Below are positions 2,893-64,000 of a stretch of DNA of 64,000 bases, piece by piece. The stretch comes from Geosiphon pyriformis uo1. Taxonomy: Eukaryota; Fungi; Glomeromycota. The notes under the pieces are model-generated. The model saw only the letters and a program-made list of their open reading frames with translations. It was not told the DNA's origin and did no database searches. A program made the position numbers and the translations under genes. The stretch covers positions 62,001 to 126,000 of the forward strand of contig JAAOMT010000070.1 of NCBI GenBank assembly GCA_016748015.1, in the 5' to 3' direction. Each line of letters starts with the position of its first letter. Positions within the stretch are counted from its first letter, which is position 1.

Positions 2893-5095
2893 ATGACCAA
2901 AGTGAAAAGTAAAAAAGCTGTACCTAATATTTTTTCTAAGATATCTAATAAAATCCAACCAAAAAAACTCTCTTTGTTGTAAAAACTACTAAACAGAACA
3001 TCTTAAAAGTTTTTTTTAAAATATTCATAGTAAAAGGCTGTCTTTGGTGACTTTTAAAGGATTTTTCTCATCTTTAACTGGTTCTTTATCTGTCAAAGTC
3101 TTTTTAAAGAGATACATTTAGGTTAGTTCTAGTGTTGTCTCTACTTCTTCAAAAAGCCCAAAATTTTTTAATAACAGACTAGTCAACAAACTGGTTTTTT
3201 TTTCCATAGTTTCTATATTAGGTGTTGCTGGTATCTTTTTTTCAAAAAAAATGGTCAAAAAGACCAAAATTTCAGAAAAGTGAGAACAGTCACTTGTTTT
3301 ATTATTATTATACTTAAGCTTTTTATTGTATTATCTAATATGTTGTTTAAAATAGACTAAGATCAATTATTGGCTGTATTACCAAATATAGTATCCTTTA
3401 ACAAATCATTACTGGTTTTAAAAACAAAACAATAGTCTCCTGTTAGATTATCTGCTTTTGAGAACTGAATTAATTAGATAGAAACTAATTCAATTTTTTT
3501 TCTGGTTTCTGGTGTTACCATTAGTGATGCTTGAGAAACTATTGTTAATTATCAAATATTTGCTAGATAGATGGTTTTTATTCTGGTGTTTGGTGCTATT
3601 TTTAAGATTAAATTAGCTTATGTTAAGACTGCTTTTTAGTCTGTACATAGTTTTTTGGATGTAAATTTAGTATCAAAAAACAATATAAAACTTTTTTATA
3701 TAAAGTTTGCTTTTTAAAAATCTTTGAAAATTGCTCTTTTGGTTGAGTTTACAAGCTCAGTTTATTTAGCCACTTTTAAAATTGCCAAGTCTGGTAATTT
3801 TTGAGTCTGGTTCTTTTTTTACTATTGTTATGCTGCATAATATGCTTTTAGATATATTTGTTGTTAACATTAAAACAGCTTTTAGTGTATTTGGTAAAGT
3901 CATTTGTGTTGTATTAAAGTTTATAATATGTGATTATTCATTTTGAGAAACTGAATTTTGCTGTTTTTGCTTTAAATTATTGGTCACTTTTAATAAATAA
4001 AAATAATATTAGGATCTTTTTTTTGGTAAATTAAAATAAAATTATTTTGTTTTATATTAAGTTTAAAGCCAAGTTATTAATCTTTTTTTAGCTATACTGC
4101 TTTTAAAATTAGTAATATAATTTCTCAAATTGATGATTAGACATGTTTTATTCTTTGCTCTCTTAATTTTGGTTGTTATTTCCAATTTGTTTTGGTTATA
4201 TTTGGATCTTATATTGATTTAAATGCTGTAGTTATTAGAACTAATATGTTAAAAAAATGCTATATTTGATAAAAAACTTCTGAAAATTGGTACTGCTTTT
4301 GATGCCAATATTTAAATTATCTGGTTTTAAATTGTAAGATGTTTTTATCTCTTCTTTTTAAGGTTTTCAAGGCTTTTGTTCTTTGTATTATTAACAACAA
4401 GTTTTATGTCAAGACTGCTGTTTTTGTGCTTTTTTTGATTTTTTGTTCTTCTGTTGGTTTAATTTTTTTTGCTGATATAATATTTAATAATCTTGTGGTT
4501 TTTTTTTAGTTGATCTCTCTGGAATTTAAGTTGGCCAAGCTTTTTGTTTTGGTTAATTTTATTGTTAAGCCAGTTGGTTTCATGATTAAAGTATTTAAAC
4601 AATTTGTTAATAAAGATTTGGTTTCAAGTAGTGCTTTTAGTCTTAAAGTCAATAAAGTTTTAATACATATGAGTATCTTTAATAAGACTGTTGATAAGCT
4701 AAAATGAGAGATGTTTGCTTTAAAAACAGAGTATAACTATGAAAACATTAATATGTTCAACTCCTATATATGTTTGTTTTCTATTAATAATAATGTTTTT
4801 TCTAATTTAATGTTTCTTTAAAAACATAAATCTGCTGTTGTTAAGACTAATGCTTTGAAAATAGCTAAGTAACTGGTTAAATTAGTTAGTAATAATACTA
4901 TATTGTTTGAAATTATTCAAAAAATGTCTTCTTTAAATAAGTTTTCTTTTAAAGTATTAATGTAGTATAATCTAAACTGGTTTAAGTAACTGGTTATATG
5001 TAAAAAGTACATGAATTAGACTTAATTTGAAATATTAAATTTGTTCTAAAGTACAAGATAATAATTAGACCATATTTGTTAAACTTAATAAATAA
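2893..5095 (+). mobile_element. Eroded ORF1-only (gag-like) non-LTR element ending in the LINE 3' UTR; no ORF2
   Basis: ATG 2893 (MTKVKSKK...), broken frames with RRM-like segments (NIKTAFSVFGKV) and a degenerate zinc knuckle ~4290-4335 (YCF*CQYLNYLVLNC); stop TAG 4963-4965 immediately followed by a ~120-nt tail that aligns with 17358-17476. Confidence 0.7.
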
Positions 5096-7657: not shown

Positions 7658-8646
7658 CCCGACATTGGAATCAATGAAAACTAATACAAGGTCACGAGGT
7701 CATTGCGGTCGATCTTCAAATTGAATTAAACTTTAATAAAACTTGAAAATAGCAGATGGCATAATAAATTAATTCCTGGGCGTGTGGGAAATCAGTTTTT
7801 CACAAGGAAATGCGATTGGTCGATAACCGAGTCCACTGCTACGGCTATTTTTACAATTCAAATTACAAATGTCTCATAGCAAAGTTCATGTATCCAAAAA
7901 GACGAAGAGGTATTGTATGACATTTAGGATTTCAAAAAGGAAAGCAAATAACGCGAAGCGGTAACACTGGCATTTTTAGCCTTAGCACTAATCACTTTTT
8001 CGTAGAAACATATAATATTTTCAAATACCCACCCCTTTGTTCATGTTCACGTACGACTTCAGAGAATTGGTTTCCGAGTTTCAAGAACTTTGACCTTTCT
8101 TGCCACCTCTTTACGGAGGACTACATACATCGTAACACAATTATTTGTGTTGCATACTGTATTTATATAATTCATTTCTTTTCCTACTTGACAAATTCCA
8201 TTCTTTTTTATTAGTTGCAAGATAGTATTATAAATTTTCAGAAAATTTAAGCGATTCGAATAGCTACAGGCCAAAGAAACCGACGGATAGGTACTGGGAA
8301 GGAGAAAAGGGTTCGAACCCCTTCAACTGATAAAATTTATCACGGCTTCGATGTTGAAATATCAAATATAAATATGAGAACCAAGACAAAAAATTTTATG
8401 GTTTCTTTGTATCCTGGATATATTTCTCATTTTTTATAATACACTTTTTTAACTTCAAACTCCATACCCCACTTGAGTTTTCTGAAAATTTCCCCTTTAC
8501 GCTAGGCGTAACTCTGTAATATAGCTTTAAATAATGCAATAAATATACGTACAGTTTCAATAATAAATCTAACTTGAACGTAAAATTGTGATTTTCCGAT
8601 TCTCAATCTTCAATTCAATCTATCACATTATAATAATGATGTTGAT

Positions 8647-25300: not shown

Positions 25301-27199
25301 ATGCAATGGCCTTTCTAAGTTTTTTTTATCTGGAGTAATCTGTATATTTAGAATTATTGAATTATTTGCTGTCAATTTTGAATTATACAAGATCTGTTTG
25401 TTTTTTTTAATTTAAATAATGGATTAGAAATTAATATAAATATATAATGTGGTTTTAATTAGTTTGAATAAATAGTTATATATAGTAAGTACATAAGTCA
25501 TATTTAGTTTGATACACTTAGTTTGTTTTTGTATGTTAAATAATAGTTAAATTGCACTTATAAAATAATAATAATAATGATAAAATAATAAAAAATACCC
25601 AAGTATTTGTAAGATTTATTTTTTTTAACTATTAAAATTAGTAAATTACTGATTAATAATAAGAAAATATTAATTTTATAATTAATAAAAATAACTATTG
25701 TTTTGTTATTATTGATTAAAATATCATTAACCTAAAAAAATTTACTTATTATATTCAAAATATACTAAATTGTAATTTGACTATAACTTATTTAAGTGTA
25801 TTATTAATAAAAATCTTAACAACAAAAAAAAATTCAAATTGACTTAATTCTTAATTTGTTTTGTTTTAATAATAAATTTAGTATTAATTTTATATTTACA
25901 TATATTTTTTTTTGTCTTTTAACTTTATATTAAAAAAAATTATAAAAGATTTACCAGAAAAAAAAATTTATTTTAATTTAACTTATTATATATATAATAT
26001 TTATTTATTAAACCAAAATTTATTATAATATAATTAATCTAGTTATTGTAAATTCTACTAAAAAACCTAATAAATTTGGTATATATTTTAATTTGAACTA
26101 AATTATTTTTCAAATACTATTAACTTATTAAATTATATGTTTTATATATATTTTGTAATATTAATTAAAATTTGTAATTTTTTTTTCCAAGTATTTTTTA
26201 TTACAAAACCAATTGCAAAAATTAAAAATTGCATTTTAGTATTTTTTAAAACTGAAAAATTATTTCTATAGAATATATTAAACTTATTATAAGCCAAAAA
26301 AATTTTGTCAAAAAAAATCTTGAAAAAAATCTTTTATGTAATTTTAATTAAAACAATAAGTCTAATATTAGTTAAAATTTTTTTTATTTATATGACTTGA
26401 AAATTATCAACACTTATGTTTTTTTCTAAAATTAAGAAATTAATTTACAAATCAAACAAAAATTTAAGAAGTCTAAAAACATACTTAATACTGATTTATT
26501 ATAATGTTTTTAAAGTTTATTTATAATTCTAAATAAATTTATAGTTTTTTTATTAAACAAATATTTTATCATGTTTAGTATTTTATTAAAACTAATAGCA
26601 TTTATAACTCCAGAAAAAACACTATTGTTAACATAAATTAATAACAAATATTGTTGATGTTACAAGTTAAGAACAATATTTAAAACTTTTTATTTTTTTG
26701 TTTAATTTTATATAATCTTATCTATTTTAAACTTAACTTTCTTAGACTTTATAATTAATTTATTATTATCAATTAAATAATTCAAAACTATTTTTAAAAA
26801 AAGTATTTCAATATATTTTTAATAGTATAACTTTTATTGATTTTAAAATTTTTTATTTTCTTATTAATAACAATCTTAATTTTTACAATCTTGGTTTTTT
26901 AAGACTTAATAAGTTTGAATACATAATAAAATTTTTTTATTTTGGCTAATTTAAATCTAATTTATATTAAAACCAGTATTTGAATCCAAAAGTTCTTAAA
27001 TATAAAGTATATTATTATTAGAAAACCAACAATGTACTAAAAAATTAAAGTTAATATTTAAATTTAATTAAAAAATTTTGTAAATTTTTAAAACCAAAAT
27101 TTCTAATTTGTGAAAATAAAAAAAAATTGGTAAAAATACTATTATAACTTATATATCAAAATTTAAAAAACACTTTAATGACTAAAAAATATATAACTT

Positions 27200-28090
27200 T
27201 CTAAATAATATTCTATATAAAATTTACATATAAGAAATTTATTGAATTAATAAACTTATAACTTGGTACTTAATAATTAATTATATTGTTAGTAATTTTT
27301 AAAGATTTTCAGATCTAAAAATTTTGGTTGAGTTCTTTGTATAAAAGATAAAGATTTATTTAATAATTGTTTTTTCAAATTTTTTCTTTAGTGTAAAAAC
27401 TGGTTTAATCTAACAGTTATGCTTTTTTGATAAGCTATTCTTAAGTTTTTATTCTTGTTTTATGAGTCTTTTACCAGACTATTTTTGACATTAATATATT
27501 AGTACTTAATTTCTTAATCAATTAGTAAACAATAAAGAAACAAAAGAAAAAAAAGAAAAAAAAAAACAAGAAATTAGTATTTGTTAATAGTCATAATTAA
27601 GAGCTATTGATTCAGTGTAATTAAGTAGTAAATATTATAAACATAAATTGCTGATAGAATTAAAAAATAATAATATTGATTCAATAAAAAAAATGATAAT
27701 TTTATTTAATATTTGAATAATTATATTTTAAGATATAAAAAACTATTTTTTTAAAAAAAAAGTATGTTATTAATATTTATTGTTAACCAACTAAGAACTT
27801 GTGTGAATTTTTTTCTTATTTCTAATACTATTGCTATATATACTTAATTTTTATTATATAAGATCTTACATATTTTTACTCTTTTTTATGCTATTTTTTA
27901 GAATTGTAATTATTTTTGAGCAATATATCATAATTTCTTGAAAATATGTTGTGATTTCTTGACAATGTACTTATTTTTTAAAAATATGTATATTTCTGAA
28001 AATATGCTCATATGTTGAATACTATTTTTTTATTGGTCTATTTTTATAATTTGTTTTTTTTGTATTCTTTTTCTATAAATAATAATATTT
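27200..28090 (-). repeat. Eroded LTR homologous to 1370-2154 (inverted); possible internal-region relics to its left
   Basis: Reverse complement matches TATATATAG.A.TAGTATTAGAAA (~27820-27845 vs ~1537-1560), CAATAGCTCTT.AT.ATGACTATT.A (~27585-27610 vs ~1700-1726), CTGGTAAAA..AACAAG..AGAATAGCTTA (~27430-27478 vs ~1858-1911); ends imprecise. Confidence 0.7.
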
Positions 28091-28099
28091 ATAAAAATT

Positions 28100-30660
28100 A
28101 CTTAAATTAATAAAAACAAATACAGCATAATAATTAATATTAAATTTTTTTTATACTTAAAACTTTCTAATTAGTTATTATATTAATAAGATTTAAAAAA
28201 ATAAATATGTAATTAATTATTTTTTTAATACTTTTAGAGTTTTTTTATGTATAAGTCTTAATTGTAAAACTATTAATTAAGAAGTTAACTAAATTTAAAT
28301 CAAAATACTTCTTAAAACTTACATATTTCTAAGTATTATTTTATTAAAATTATTACTTAAAATCACAAAAAAAATTTAAAATAATTAATAATAAATAATA
28401 AAACAAAGTTTTTTTAAACTTATAAATAAATATTCTTAAAACAAAAAAATAAATTTTAAAAAATTACAAATATTATTATTGAATACTATTTTTTATAATA
28501 CTAAAATAAAAAAATATTTTTACTATTTTTTTTGTTGTTTTATTTAAATTAAGTTAGTTTAATTCTATAATAATTAAAAAAAATTAAAAATTATTATTAA
28601 AAAAATGATATAAAAAAAATATAAATAATTAAAAAACCACTTTTTTTAGTCAATAATTTTAAAAAAGCTTTTAATTTCTAAGAAATTATTTAATTTAATT
28701 AAAACAATAATATTAACTATTAATAAAAGTGTTTTGCTAAATACTAATTTCAAAAAACCAAATATAATATTAAATTAAGTTGTAAATATTAAAAAAAATT
28801 AAATAAATATATTTAAAAAATCAATTATTTAATTTTATTTAAATTTTTAATAATTAATTAGATTGTAACAAAAATTTTTAATAAAATTTGTTAAATTAAA
28901 ACAAACTAATTTTTTAGTTTTTAGATAATTAATATTAATTAATAAAAACTTTATTTAAGTAAATAAAACTATTAAAAATCAAATTACTTAAAACAAAAAA
29001 TAAATTTAATACTTTATTGTTTATTTTGCTAATAAATATTATTGTTCATAATTTTAAATAAAATCTATAAAAAAAAATATATGAATTATTAATTATTTTT
29101 TTATAATAAACAATAAGATAAAATATATTATTATTTGTTTAAATTAAAAAAAATTTAAATAAATCTATTATATTATTATATTATTTAATAAAGTTAATTT
29201 ATATTAAATTAAATTTGGTTTGTTATAAAAATTGTAAATATTTTAATTATATCAAATTAAACTATAATTCTCTTATAACCAAAAAAATTTGTCAAATATA
29301 TTTTATATAAAATAAATTAAGATTATTTAATTATTATATATATTAAAAAAAATATTTTAATTTTTTATTTTATTATTTTTAATAATAAATTTTGGGCTTA
29401 AATAATATCTTTAATTTAAAAACAATATATATTAATAATTTTAATATTGTTATTAAACAAAATTTAAATTAATAATTAACATAAAATTATATTTATAATT
29501 TTTATTATTAATTAATATATAATATTATTTTTAATATAATTATTTATTATTTAGTTAAATTATTAAAAATTGCTATTTAATTAAATTATGTAATATTTTA
29601 AACTATGTAATATTTAAAAATTTACCAAAATATTTAATAGCTTATTAAAATAATTTGTAATTTGTTAAAATAAATATTTAATTTATTAAAATATTAGCGA
29701 AAAAAGCATTAAAACTCGAAATACTATTACAACAAAAAATATAAAAGAAGAATCTTTTTATTTAAAAAAATATATTAATTTATTAATTATTAAAATAAAA
29801 ATAAAAATAAAAATATTAATTAATTAGTCATAATAAATCAATAAAATAAAAATTTATTTTAAAAATCCAAAACTTTTTTTATAATTAAAATGCTTTAAAA
29901 ATTTACAAAATTTTGATTAATATTTTGAAATTAACTAGTTATTAATTTTAATAACAGTTTAATTAACTCTATACTTAAACAAAAAACATTATCTTATTAA
30001 AACAAATATTTATTTATTTATTTATTTTTTATTTTTTTATATTATTAAATAGCTTATAATTAAGATTTTTTGTAAAAAAGTTAACTTTTATTGCAATATA
30101 ATTACATATTATTAAAAAACCTATATTTAAAAATTTTTATGAAGAATTAACTTTTATTAACATAAAATTGATTATTTTATTATAAATTCAATAATATAAA
30201 TAATTTAAAATATAAAAAAATATTTTGAAAATTAATTAGCTTATTAAAAATTTAACAGCTTTTATTAACAATAAAATTAACAACAATTTAGTATTAATAA
30301 TATAAGAAAAATAACCAAAAATTTTGTGTTTTTTTAGAAATTTAAAACAACAAAAAGTTTATTTAATGTGATAATCATTTTTAATACAACAATCCTAAAA
30401 TATTACCAGTTAATTTATACTTATTATAAGCAAAAATTTGATAAAAAATTTTTCAAAAATTATATTAATAACTACTTTTTTAAAAATTATAATATTTTAA
30501 AAAGCAAAAAAAATTTTTATAAAAAACCAAAATATTGTAATCATAAAATACTTGACACCTATTTTTAAAACTTGTTAATCAACAATTTTTACTTAACTTA
30601 AAATTAGAACCAAAATATAATAATAACAAAAAAACAGAAAAAAACTTCATAAATTAGCCA
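28100..30660. other. Extremely AT-rich block, probably terminally eroded repeat relics
   Basis: Almost no C/G and virtually no CpG; no interpretable ORF. Confidence 0.5.
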
Positions 30661-30984
30661 AATAATTTAGATTTCTATATTATGGATTTCGTTTGAATTA
30701 AAATGATACTAAATTCAATGTTTCAATACACAAAAATGCCATTGGAGCTTATGGAGGATCATACTGTGTCTATCGTGCTTTGGCTGTGGCAATGGGTGCT
30801 TTTGGTCTAATCATAGACCTGATTTTAAAAATACCGAGCCTACTGTAATAATTGAATCTCATATCTAAATCGTGAGTTATTTTATTTATCGAGTCATAAC
30901 CATGCACTAATCCCCAAATTTTACGTAAAGCCTTGCTTCGCACACACACATTTAAAGTCCGTGGAGACAGCATATTTTTAGCTA

Positions 30985-33122
30985 ATGTCGGAAATCAAAA
31001 TACACGAGTACTTTAACCACAAGCCTGTGGAATAGAACATTTTGAACTTCCTAAATGAATGCGATACAAAACAATTTGACCTTAAGCTAGATTTTTATAT
31101 CAAATCCCTTGAAATTATCACTGACTGTAAACAAGGCAACAGGCAAAAAAAAGCAGGTCTGTTACTTGATAACTATAGAAAAGCAAGTAAAATCTTTTGG
31201 TTAGAATTAGTGGCGTGACGAGGACTTTTTTAGTTCAAGGTTGCTCACTGAGCCACAAAACCAGTGTTGGGGCACAAATGGCTTTCTTGGTTGTCTGATG
31301 TTCAAGGTTTCTTGCTGACCCAGCACTGGTCCCACTGGGGAATAAGTAACTTTTTCGGTTACCTGGTGTTGAAGATTTTTCACTGATCTGTGGGATGAGA
31401 AATCGGATATCCGATATGTACCAGAGATATGCTAGCTAAGAAATATTTCTAATTTCTTGTATCTTCTTTTCTAGGATTCTCGACCTGACCAACAACTTGC
31501 TAAGAATTGGGAGATATAATGTAAATTAGGCAAAATGAATGGTAGATCTTTAATTAATATTCACAAATCAACGTTGACTGGGAGTGAAATTGGGTCTATT
31601 GAACATGGAATCTTCATTGCTAACTTTTCAAAGAAGAGAGACTATAAAGTGGTAAAGATGAGAGCTTTTTAGTGAAAGTTATTAAGATCGATAGAACTAA
31701 TTATTTTCTATTACAATATTTTAGGACGATGAGTTCGATGAAGAAAGAGTCCCAAAAAAGCATTGTGAAGAAACTAAGTATACTACATCGCTGCCACCAC
31801 CACCACCACCACCACTATTACGTTCAGTATTAATTGGATTAAGAGAAAAAGCATTTACGAGCGAAGAAAAAACTCTTTTTTGATGATGAGATTATAAAAA
31901 TTGATGATGACATTATAATAATTGATGATGTAAATGAACTGTGCTTTGAGGGCGAAGATTCAGCAGATGATTTCAAGATAGGAGAGACCAATGTGTCTCA
32001 GTTATTTCGGCATTATCAAAACGAATCAATAAAGATAGCGAAGACTGATGGTTTATTCGTTTAATCAAATGTGCACGAAATACTTTCACTATCATCAATT
32101 TTTCTGCTCATTCCGGATTCTCACTCAAAAACAATGATCAATATATTCAGTTCTCCTTTACTTGATGAAATCCATCAAAAAATTACCCCAGCACGGCAAA
32201 TAAAATTAAATCCAGAGTGCAAATCAAAATTTAGGGATGCAATCAAGCTAGCAACAAAGGAGTCATGCGGCCATGCCATAAATTGGTTGTTTACAGCACT
32301 TGGAAATAGTCAAGCTTTGAGGGAGAATATGGGCTTTTTAATATTAGAATGTATAAGATTATTACCCATGATAAAGCTTAAGAATGAGCCCAGCGAAATA
32401 ACATTCATCACCAATTATTTAGACCACATTATGAAGGTGATTTCACATGACCCAAGCAAACATATCGTTGAGTGGCCCAACACGGGTCTTAATGAAAGCA
32501 AGGCAAGGAAGCCACAAGGAAGAAGCAAACAGCCGGACTTTACAGTATCCACCATTCATCAGCTAGAAACGAGTGGTGTTATATTGTGGGTGAAGTCAGT
32601 CCACCTGCAGAAAAAAACAATGTGTATAAGAATTGTAATGATTTAATTCGCGTTGGTATTTTTATGAAGGACTGTCTTGATTTAGCCATAGACTTGAGTG
32701 CTGATATTAAAATGCTTGGTTTTCAATGTGTTGGTAAGACAAATTGGATTAGTTTTTCTCTCATAATTTCTGTAAATAATTTTTTTTTGCCTCCCCCCAC
32801 AGATCATAAAATAGATTTCTATATTATGGATCTCGTTCAAGGAACATATATTATGATCTATGTCGGCCAAGTATCAGTTCCAGCCTCGGTGAAAGAGATG
32901 TTTCCATTCATTGATGAAATGGAAATGCTTTTAGAAATACGAAGGATTTTTCGCGAATCCTTTGATACTTTATACGCCAAGCTCCGTTATCCTAGTCCAC
33001 CATCAACAAAGGCACGTTTCAAACGCGATACGCTTGGCACACCCAAATTTAAAGAGCTTGTGAGCAAGACACGCGACTGTCATAGAAACTGTCCAAGTTG
33101 GTATGGACGTTCTAATAGATAG
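30985..33122 (+). pseudogene. Disrupted intron-containing gene of a PD-(D/E)xK (restriction-endonuclease-fold)-like family, of the kind expanded in Mucoromycota/Glomeromycota
   Basis: ATG 30985 MSEIKIHEYF..; in-frame stops (TAG 31033-31035, TAA ~31517, TAA ~32062) and frameshift ~32585; C-terminal domain EWPN..L.ESK.RK..GRSKQPDF...GEVSP....K..DLIRVGIFMKD...GFQCVG; introns 31183-31474 (GC-AG), ~31652-31724, ~32734-32802. Confidence 0.7.
31210..31395 (+). ncRNA. Candidate structured intronic RNA: three tandem stem-closed units sharing a GTT(C/G)AAG..TT..(T/C)(G/A)CTGA 3' core
   Basis: Stems GTGGC/GCCAC (31210-14/31252-56), ACCAGTGTTGGG/CCCAGCACTGGT (31260-71/31319-30), TCCCAC/GTGGGA (31330-35/31390-95); CTGA immediately 5' of each closing strand. 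Confidence 0.55.
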
Positions 33123-61627: not shown

Positions 61628-62299
61628 TAGGTCAATTGTGGTTTCAATTTACTGTGCTTCATTGGATGTGTATCTATAAATAAGATGGCTTTTAGTCACT
61701 TGCACACGTTACATTTACTCTACTTTCTAGGCTCTCCCTGATTCCACTGATTCAAAAAAAAAAGAAAGGGCTGATTGTCACTTGAGAGATCTGATTTTTA
61801 TACTTGAATTTGATGATCAGCCACTCACTACAGAACGATTATAAATCAGAGTTCATTGGCCGAAAATATTTTTTTATTATCTAATATTAAACTGTAAAAG
61901 TTCTGGTCTATTCCTTCCGTTATTCCACATACTTGTGAAAATTTCCACCATTCCGTGATATGTTTATATTACTATTTCACAAAGTGAAACAAGCACTTTA
62001 GCATATCCTTAATTTTGAACCAAATTTTTGAAATATGAAATTAAAGATTTTTGAGATATTTAAATTCAGTTTGGTGAAAAAATTTGCCTATTAATAAAAA
62101 TATTAATGAGTTGCTTAGTAATGCTTACCAGATTGAAATTGCGAAAAGAAATATTCCATTCTGTTCTTTTATTTTAAATTGGTTTTTCAAAATGTTGTTA
62201 TTAAAAAAAGTTGCCTTCATATCTGTATTTTTAATACAAACCAAAAAAAAGAATTTCAAGTAATAAAAGCAGCATTTTTTCAATTTTCAATATTAAAAC

Positions 62300-64000
62300 G
62301 GATATAAAATTAACATCACAAAATTTTGAAATTGTTTAATTATCGAATACTTTTAAAATAATAATAAAAACAGTTTTAATTAATTATTGAATTTATTAAG
62401 TTTATTAATTAAATAATTGTAACAATCATTCTGTCAATTGTAAAGAAAAATTTTTAAAATTATAATATTGCAATTTTTTTTATTTTTATATATAATTAAA
62501 ATAATATTTTTTTTATTGCCGAAATGTACCCCAAACACTGAATATTCGATACAATGCAATTATTGTACATTGGACGTAAATTGCGCATAACCAGCCATTC
62601 GAAAATAATATTATAATTATTATTATTATAATTATGTCTTAAATTTTACATAAATTTTGTTGTTATTACATTTACTTAAAAATAACCATTTTTTTACTTG
62701 TATAATATTGTAGTTTTTTAAAAAAATAGTTATTAATTCAATTTTTAAAATATGTATAAAATGTTTTTTTTACAATTGTAATTTCATTTAAAATTCCAAA
62801 TTTTTGTTTATAATAAATGTAAATTAAGTAATAATATTTTAAAATTATTGTGTTAAAAAGTATATTTTGGCAAATTATAAATTATTTTATTAAACTATTA
62901 AATATTTTTTTAAATTTTTAAATATTTTAATGAATTTTTAAATATTATAATATTTAAAATATTGTATAATTTAATTATATTTATGTATTATATAAATTAA
63001 ATTATTAATTAAATAATAATAATTAATAATAATAATTAAAAAATTAATTTATGTTTCTAATAACTTAATTTTTATTTAATAATAATAATTTAATCTAATT
63101 TTTTAACATTGTTTAATAAAATTATTAAAAATTTAATTATTAAAAATAAATTTACTTAAAAACAATTTGGTTTTTTTAATATAATACTTAATATTAAAAC
63201 TATTTATTTTTTATAAAATTAATAAATAAATAGCAGTTTTTTTATTTTAAAAAAAAAGCTTAATAGTATTTATATTATTTTTATATTACCAAAATCTATT
63301 TTAATCTTAAAACTAACAAAGTTTTTAGACACGTTAATTAAAAAACTAACAAAATAATTAATGATTTTTATTATAATAATCATATTTTTTCTACTTTAAA
63401 ATTTTTATGCAAATTTTTATTCAAAAAAAAGATAACCAAAACAATTAAAAAACCAATTAGTTTAACAACAAACTTAATTAAATTAGCCAAATTAAAGATT
63501 TTAAATTTTTTGAAATTTAATTACAAAATTAATAACAAAAATAATTAAAAATACAAAAAAAAAAAAACTCCAAAAAAACAAAACCATTTATATATAATTT
63601 TATATTAATAAAAAATGGCTAAAATTTTTAAAATCATTAGCAAATTTAAAAAAATATTTTATAATCCAAAGATAAATAATCTAAACTTTAATATTTATAA
63701 TAATATTAATATTCAAAAGTTTTTTATTAGTACTTATATAAAATACAAGTATTTAAAACAATTAAGCTTAAAATTTTTAAAGAATTAAAAATTACAATAA
63801 TAAAATATTAATAATAATAAGAATTAAAAAAATAGAAAATAAACCATATATAATTATTAATTTAAAAAATTAAATTACTAATTTAAAACAATATAAACAA
63901 AAAAAATATATTTTTAAAAATAATAATTTTTTTTTAATTAAGCAGAAAAAAATTTTATTACTGTTTTTTTAATTAGTACAAATTAGTTAATAAAAATAAT
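62300..64000. other. AT-rich eroded block, probable repeat relics
   Basis: Composition as in 28-30.6 kb; no ORFs. Confidence 0.45.

Follow-up and report, generated by a model that had tools for sequence, protein, structure and literature searches.

Conserved structured RNAs in fungal introns are, to our knowledge, few beyond small nucleolar RNAs (snoRNAs) and the thiamine pyrophosphate (TPP) riboswitch, and we know of none described for Glomeromycotina, fungi that cannot be cultured alone and for which there is almost no RNA biology. Here, we focus on a tandem array of three folded units in the first intron of a gene for a nuclease-like protein in Geosiphon pyriformis uo1. The gene lies in a 64,000-nucleotide (nt) stretch of DNA (assembly GCA_016748015.1, contig JAAOMT010000070.1, positions 62,001 to 126,000 of the forward strand), which is AT-rich in a composition scan and is called the window below, position 1 being its first letter; the public annotated product of the locus is KAG9305649.1 (P0012). 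The array in the window is best explained as one copy of a conserved RNA element that had not been described before; this copy resides in a pseudogene that is transcribed, and the element occupies the first intron, phase 0 and mostly of GC-AG type, of a Glomeromycotina-wide gene family. Very probably, this element has been selected as a sense-strand RNA tied to the array intron.

The closest described systems each share part of this design. Fungal intronic TPP riboswitches, such as that of Neurospora NMT1, also place a structured RNA in a 5′-proximal intron with two competing donors, one of which is unproductive; the array, however, has no match to TPP or any other aptamer in Rfam, is tandem, and has a core that is partly locus-variable, which a small-molecule pocket would not tolerate. 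The autoregulation of yeast RPL30 and RPS14 follows a matching logic, in that the product of the array-bearing gene could prevent splicing by binding the intron-proximal structure of its own pre-mRNA, and the locus-specific words of the array would fit such a putative cognate reader; the yeast sites are single, kink-turn-like and found in ribosomal protein genes, whereas the array holds up to six word copies on three scaffolds in a nuclease-like family. Intron-hosted polycistronic snoRNA clusters of plants and fungi are likewise intronic and tandem, with a terminal stem for each unit, but the array lacks conserved C/D or H/ACA boxes, a conserved guide and any Rfam match. Bacterial type III toxin–antitoxin loci (ToxIN) combine a nuclease gene with tandem structured RNA repeats of locus-specific sequence; there, the 36-nt repeats precede the toxin and are processed by an RNase that is not of the PD-(D/E)XK type, whereas the array sits in a eukaryotic spliceosomal intron. 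Introner-like elements of Dothideomycetes and other multicopy structured introns are also longer than usual, structured and present in many copies per genome, but occur in unrelated genes, while the array is found at one homologous position in one family and predates the split of three orders. Finally, the ‘zipper’ stems of long yeast introns bring donor and branch point together, and the closing stems of the array similarly loop out approximately 50 nt each to give a near-normal effective length; zipper stems are single and not conserved in sequence, whereas the looped-out part of the array is itself conserved.

The initial annotation of the window had proposed three back-to-back units with closing stems, inner hairpins with T-rich loops and a shared core, followed by a 14-bp palindrome, and all of these are present. 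A repeat finder places the shared core at 31233, 31300 and 31368 (spacing 67 and 68 nt), and each unit is recognized by R1, a covariance model built from G. pyriformis units only. The intron and its units are as follows.

31183–31474, + strand: first intron, phase 0, 292 nt, with GCAAGT donor and TCTAG acceptor, placed by reading-frame homology with L008/L025
31210–31256, + strand: unit 1 (R1 37.1 bits, E 1.7e-8), closing stem GTGGC (31210–31214) with GCCAC (31252–31256); short by approximately 11 nt relative to paralogues
31260–31330, + strand: unit 2 (R1 70.9 bits, E 4e-19), closing stem of 12 bp (31260–31271 with 31319–31330), inner hairpin 31275–31283/31289–31297, tail 31298–31318
31330–31395, + strand: unit 3 (R1 63.6 bits, E 8e-17), closing stem TCCCAC (31330–31335) with GTGGGA (31390–31395), its inner part disturbed by an indel; inner hairpin 31343–31351/31357–31365

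A unit of approximately 67 nt is built of a closing stem of its own (5–12 bp), an inner hairpin of 9 bp with many G.U pairs, and a single-stranded tail of 21 nt. The tail reads (A/C)UGUUCAAG.CU, then a 7-mer, then YYGA, and runs directly up to the 3′ arm of the closing stem. Homology with paralogues that look intact identifies the segment 31183–31474 as a phase-0 intron: its borders in the window read ...LLLDNYRK, GCAAGT...TCTAG, DSRPDQQLAKNW, in the same phase as in the intact-looking, GC-richer paralogue L008/L025 (G000:C654), where ...LLFDRYRK is followed by GTATGG and an intron of 291 nt with three well-formed units, ending in CCAG before exon 2 (DTRPDRQIAKDW). The description of this intron as longer and richer in GC than the others was borne out, since it measures 292 nt versus 73 and 69 nt for the neighbouring introns seen in RNA, and the GC content of the array is 0.46 versus 0.31–0.35 in the flanking exons. 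The array has no coding potential, with stops in all frames, and the intron carries stops in all three frames in 14 paralogues.

The array is a recurrent part of a gene family. A BLAST search with the intron returned about a dozen copies in the Geosiphon genome, with homology spanning the whole gene of approximately 2.2 kb. R1 derives from an alignment (A2) in which units were trimmed to the inner 5 bp of the closing stem, giving 57 gapless columns, and a genome search with it found 53 units at approximately 30 places, in arrays of one to four. Nearly all of the fetched places have an exon-1 homologue immediately 5′ of the units, and the distance from donor to first unit is 26–40 nt, rising to approximately 100 nt in two copies. 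The units had been expected to be kept in paralogue introns with compensatory changes, and both the exon-1-linked matches and the covarying stems agree with this; neither a match to a known snoRNA nor a transposon copy independent of the family was found. A miniature inverted-repeat transposable element, free transposon or introner is ruled out, as the units follow exon-1 homologues of one family and the closing stems differ among units; an origin of the closing stems as target-site duplications is likewise ruled out, because the arms of units 1 and 3 are inverted and not direct repeats. In dead, AT-decayed copies, the array decays along with the gene (GC 0.18–0.21).

Family members that carry the same N-terminal module were taken from three further species, and R1 recognizes units in the same-position intron of each: three in Paraglomus occultum (E 2e-11, 6e-16 and 6e-13), three in Rhizophagus irregularis (E 2.5e-5, 0.02 and a marginal 0.84) and two in Funneliformis caledonium (E 5e-5 and 0.0065). 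Together with Geosiphon, these genera fall in three orders, Paraglomerales, Archaeosporales and Glomerales, whose split is hundreds of millions of years old. Among 14 Geosiphon paralogues, identity is 0.68 in the array versus 0.55 in exon 1 and 0.51 in exon 2, and between P. occultum and Geosiphon it is 0.65–0.73 in the array, 0.50–0.59 in exon 1 and 0.38–0.55 in exon 2; judged by these alignments, the array is conserved as well as the flanking exons or better. A scan of metagenomes with a 22-nt degenerate pattern of the tail gave five matches without a hairpin, in large unrelated contigs, which is the level of chance. A sister subfamily has long introns with tandem repeats at the same phase-0 position, in R. 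irregularis P0106 (GC-AG; two repeats of approximately 120 nt, L029 3352–3680) and P. occultum P0018 (two repeats of 67–69 nt, L031 3309–3572); the visual impression is that the P0018 units share the hairpin-in-hairpin plan and the resemblance between loop and tail. At the P0002 locus of Acaulospora morrowiae (L030 620–890) there is no intron at the array position, and a tandem duplication of approximately 148 nt is present in the 5′ region, just upstream of the likely start codon.

Evidence for selection on structure comes from 44 units of four species, in which 86.8% of cells are paired versus 72.7% for shuffled and 28–48% for slid partners, the cells being counts of sequences and not of independent events. 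Double-sided changes occur in 12 of the 14 pairs. Many copies carry heavy C→T and G→A decay, which on its own turns G-C into A-T on both arms, and we therefore give weight to flips of the transversion type: GC to CG and the reverse at the ends of the closing stems, and AU to CG and the reverse in the inner helix. A helix in unit 1 also covaries, from TGAC/GTCA to TGCA/TGCA or TGGC/GCCA. The strand of action is indicated by an asymmetry between 117 G.U cells and 25 A.C cells, which points to a sense-strand RNA because a strand-symmetric mutation bias would give equal counts; with three of its nine pairs G.U, the inner helix is, as read from these sequences, one that exists only on the sense RNA. 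Units 2 and 3 of the same array have cores that are 93% identical, versus 69% between loci (three pairs), and in P. occultum the two cores are identical. The closing stems differ within an array yet keep their arms complementary, and stems of a given type correspond as orthologues between loci and between species. Homogenized cores alongside distinct, complementary stems are as expected if gene conversion acts on the cores while selection keeps the units folding separately. On inspection, paralogues share no long-range helix pairing the donor region with the 3′ part of the intron.

A second regularity concerns primary sequence: the hairpin loop and the tail carry the same 7-mer, and each locus has its own word (CTGCTCG, CTCTTCG, CTGTTAG, CTGCTGG and CTATTCG are examples). 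Within a unit, loop and tail are 1.2 mismatches apart, versus 2.4 for loops and tails taken from different loci, a difference reached by 0 of 2000 permutations. R. irregularis and F. caledonium obey the same rule with words of their own, CUUCGAG-like in the former and UCAAAG-like in the latter. Searching for the complement of the 7-mer within 2 kb gave nothing consistent, and a CGAAGAG in L025, at the end of exon 2, seems to be a chance match. The identity of loop and tail may reflect either short conversion tracts between the sub-repeats or one locus-specific factor that reads both.

The RNA evidence consists of assembled contigs of three runs placed on the window; two of these runs contain cDNA, as spliced joints are present in them. 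The remaining features of the gene are listed below in order of position.

30884, + strand: candidate transcription start (5′ end of a cDNA contig), where contig X3 begins with a loose CGGCCGGG tail ahead, which we take to be the end of a template-switch oligonucleotide
30985–31182, + strand: exon 1, the N-terminal module (MSEIKIHEYF...LLLDNYRK), with 51% amino acid identity to exon 1 of L008
31157–31158, + strand: alternative GT donor (CAG/GTCTGT), 26 nt upstream of the GC donor, from the X2 joint 31156/31475
31396–31415, + strand: post-array motif, GGGATGAGAAATCGG-like and also present in R. irregularis, followed by the 14-bp palindrome (31402–31415)
31449–31453, + strand: CTAAT, presumably the branch point by the fungal consensus CTRAY, approximately 21 nt before the acceptor and kept in paralogues
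31475–31651, + strand: exon 2 (DSRPDQQLAKNW...), from homology and RNA contigs
31652–31724, + strand: intron 2, 73 nt, GT..AG, from X2 and X3 splice joints in RNA contigs
32071–33122, + strand: nuclease-like C-terminal region in two overlapping reading frames, from a family search (105 representatives); it includes a 69-nt intron at approximately 32733–32801

The X3 contig covers 31045 to 31650 without a break before leaving out intron 2, and thus represents an otherwise spliced message in which intron 1 is retained. The X2 contig joins 31156 to 31475 through the upstream GT donor, which shifts the frame; the joint has GT..AG ends, and its 3′ side is covered by 30 nt only. Depths of contigs were not used to rank intron against exon. 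From sequence and reading frame, the donor is GC in the window, in at least eight paralogues, in P. occultum, in R. irregularis (two loci) and in F. caledonium, and in the other species it is found at all four loci with the array intron or the sister intron, except one (GCAAGT, GCGAGT and GCGAGT in P. occultum, R. irregularis and F. caledonium). The donor context of AG/GCAAGT type and the AG acceptor are those of a GC-AG intron, and this, together with the frame homology to L008/L025, upholds the earlier description of a GC-AG first intron.

From the conserved weak GC donor, the competing out-of-frame GT, the observed retention and the premature stops in every unproductive form, we infer that productive splicing is controlled in cis. 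The element may therefore be a cis-acting module for the control of splicing and intron retention, a role that we propose tentatively. Folding of the units would shorten the intron of approximately 290 nt to roughly the effective size of the usual introns of approximately 70 nt, and would display repeated single-stranded words, namely UUCAAG and the 7-mer of loop and tail. A factor binding the displayed words would decide whether the weak GC donor is used; otherwise the intron would be retained or the upstream GT used, either of which would lead to a premature stop, and the array would thereby set the amount of nuclease-like protein that is made.

Several observations weigh against this proposal. 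The counts of paired cells are inflated by shared ancestry, with few independent events in Geosiphon, and the folding energy of the whole intron is ordinary (z −1.8, −0.9, −0.7 and −2.3). Unit number varies from one to four and hybrid units with weak stems exist, so that dosage is not strict. The sister introns of P0106 and P0018 gave no significant match with R1, R2 or nhmmer. The RNA basis is assembled contigs of one pseudogene copy, and in these only the GT at 31157 and retention were seen and not use of the GC donor at 31183, which is weak evidence, as contigs cannot prove that the donor is never used. Finally, an architectural role alone leaves both the conserved tail and the locus-specific identity of loop and tail unexplained. 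Among the readings considered, a cis switch on the weak GC donor nevertheless ranks first, while falling somewhat short of what could be called probable.

Known RNA classes account poorly for the array. Rfam 15 gave no match at E≤10 for the introns of the window and L025 and none at E≤1 for the whole loci L029 and L031. ARAGORN found no transfer RNA (tRNA), and for a tRNA or a tRNA-derived short interspersed nuclear element no cloverleaf is formed, GUUCAAGGC resembling a T-loop or B box but lacking a T stem. An H/ACA snoRNA is ruled out, with no ACA 3 nt from the unit end and an internal loop of 3 nt against 21 nt, where symmetric pseudouridylation pockets would be expected. The initial annotation had seen kink-turn, box C/D geometry in unit 1, and a cluster of box C/D snoRNAs would indeed be intronic with terminal stems, with CUGA beside the 3′ arm in many units and GUGACGA in unit 1 of the window. 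This geometry did not survive comparison. A near match to the C box RUGAUGA occurs in unit 1 only, and in some copies, where the heptamer varies (GUGACGG, AUGGCGA, GUGCAGG, GUGGCAG) within the covarying helix described above, while units 2 and 3 read GCA. At the D-box position the GA is nearly invariant, yet the motif reads CUGA, UCGA, CCGA, UUGA or AUGA, intact-looking copies such as L025 included. No conserved antisense element of 10–21 nt is present upstream of the D-like box, where the locus-specific 7-mer lies, although complementarity to ribosomal RNA was not searched. On the sequences at hand, a box C/D reading would thus already fail on its defining boxes, and of all the explanations it is the one we find least credible.

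More weight attaches to a small-RNA reading, although we still consider it unlikely. The units would be cut out of the intron after splicing and persist as a new class of stable small non-coding RNA, with closing stems guarding the ends and the host gene mainly a carrier. The build is that of polycistronic small RNAs (tandem units, each with its own closing stem, the stems kept distinct), conservation across orders equals or exceeds that of exons, and contigs covering the interior of the intron occur in the run with the spliced form; contigs, however, cannot show discrete ends or levels. Neither decayed nor intact copies match Rfam, the loops and part of the tail are locus-specific and not conserved guides, and the array decays with the gene in dead copies. 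Less likely again is that the array is the putative cognate RNA of the protein of the same gene. The link would be either autoregulation, of the kind known from yeast RPL30, or an RNA that inhibits the nuclease or serves as its substrate, in the manner of type III toxin–antitoxin systems. Such a pairing would be compatible with the cis splicing-control reading, and it would suit the permutation result and the parallel changes in loop and tail (CTGTTAG, CTGCTGG and CTATTCG among them), which recur with other words in R. irregularis and F. caledonium. The search in cis for a complement found none, which makes a protein reader plausible, and the nuclease fold is real, with conserved acidic residues. 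Set against this, most PD-(D/E)XK enzymes are DNases, gene conversion over very short tracts could also make loop and tail identical, and we know of no eukaryotic precedent for type III systems. The locus is on these grounds a doubtful candidate for a self-recognizing nuclease–RNA module in a eukaryote, with a 7-nt word displayed up to six times per array; if the candidate held, a cognate module would have persisted ever since arbuscular-mycorrhizal fungi last shared an ancestor.

That the array is a functionless tandem repeat, shaped by unequal crossing-over and GC-biased gene conversion in a multicopy, partly selfish family, with compensation arising from C→T and G→A bias, is very unlikely. 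Concerted evolution is evident, unit number changes by recombination, the transition decay of many copies alters both arms together, and the folding z-scores are weak. A neutral repeat, however, fits poorly with a recognizable array at the same intron position across three orders, and does not predict double changes of the transversion type in stems, the excess of G.U over A.C, or closing stems that stay distinct while cores homogenize. It is more improbable still that the element acts as DNA, either as tandem B-box-like GTTCAAGGC sites for TFIIIC or as recombination signals favouring exchange between the conserved 5′ module and divergent nuclease domains. GTTCAAGGC fits the B-box or T-loop consensus, which is GTTCRANNC, and comparison of the window with L025 shows much stronger conservation in the 5′ module than in the 3′ domain; the helices, however, need G.U pairs and hence exist on the sense strand only, ARAGORN found no tRNA-like gene, and the motif is weaker in R. 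irregularis.

Control of splicing in cis by a sense-strand RNA thus heads the readings, and several consequences would follow from the element being what it appears to be. It would add an RNA family, recognizable by a covariance model in three orders and tied to a conserved GC-AG intron of an expanded nuclease-like family, with an unusual form of covariation in which identical locus-specific words recur in loop and strand. It would also offer a case of regulated unproductive splicing or of protein–RNA co-evolution in which the many copies are natural mutants. Finally, the element explains mis-annotations, whether models that translate through an array (P0017, P0032) or one that bridges a pseudogene (P0012). 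Public models P0017 (L070 3240–3540) and P0032 (L072 2300–2700) translate parts of an array, giving for instance a repeated HRWLTGLSA in P0017, which is probably an annotation artefact with one frame open by chance. KAG9305649.1 models the pseudogene as a protein of 405 amino acids, with its ATG at 31535 and the frameshift bridged by invented introns.

The host gene belongs to a protein family with 105 representatives at 50% clustering, spanning Paraglomus, Geosiphon, Acaulospora, Gigaspora, Rhizophagus and more, in which Pfam detects no domain. Distant relatives of the nuclease-like domain are P0104 and P0084 of the chytrid Gaertneriomyces sp. and P0094 of Jimgerdemannia flammicorona (Endogonales). 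For an intact R. irregularis member, the last 326 residues (P0106:274–599) were modelled with AlphaFold, giving a predicted local distance difference test score of 82.6, and VIA-align matches this model to the HsdR nuclease domain (Z 9.2), BpuSI (8.5), DrdV (8.2), TT1808 (7.3) and 9y1l (7.1), with an overall range of 9.2–6.2 that includes DUF820. Foldseek against the PDB gives a probability of 0.98 to 9y1l and no match below E 0.001, and the fold call rests on VIA-align Z values of 7–9 and on the consistency of the nuclease matches. On the predicted model, these confirm for the C-terminal domain a PD-(D/E)XK restriction-endonuclease fold with an α-β-β-β-α-β core, as the initial annotation had surmised in speaking of a nuclease-fold gene. 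Alignment A4 shows E109 and D157 (the latter in QPD) without variation and E176 (in GEV) in at least 90% of rows. Two positions beyond E176, S/T stands in place of the usual K; the nearly invariant K201 might take over from this catalytic lysine in the predicted nuclease.

The copy in the window is disrupted, as had been noted, by an in-frame TAG (31033–31035), a TAA (31517–31519) and a frameshift near 32590, and its pieces were searched separately with stops and frameshift unrepaired. The palindrome that follows the array carries less weight than it had been given, being common only to the window copy and its two closest paralogues. Within the gene, a (CCA)7 run at 31794–31815 encodes a proline stretch, and a 21-nt tandem repeat of 2.4 copies (31880–31930) lies inside the acidic linker exon. 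The whole gene unit of approximately 2.2 kb (30692–32877) is repeated head to tail at two other places, L005/L006/L018 (G000:C659:1,003–1,007 kb) and L017 (G000:C658:1,090–1,093 kb); these copies show massive C→T and G→A decay (GC 0.13–0.2), which looks like inactivation of duplicated genes that is either driven by methyl-cytosine or akin to repeat-induced point mutation. At L026 (G000:C701:1,147.7 and 1,151.8 kb), two arrays (3683–3806, − strand; 7833–8024, + strand) are inverted 4 kb apart with identical downstream sequence, one without exon 1 and the other with a hybrid of units 2 and 3. Elsewhere in the window, GC content is extremely low (0.09–0.15) at 26001–30000 and 62001–64000, which may be decayed repeats.

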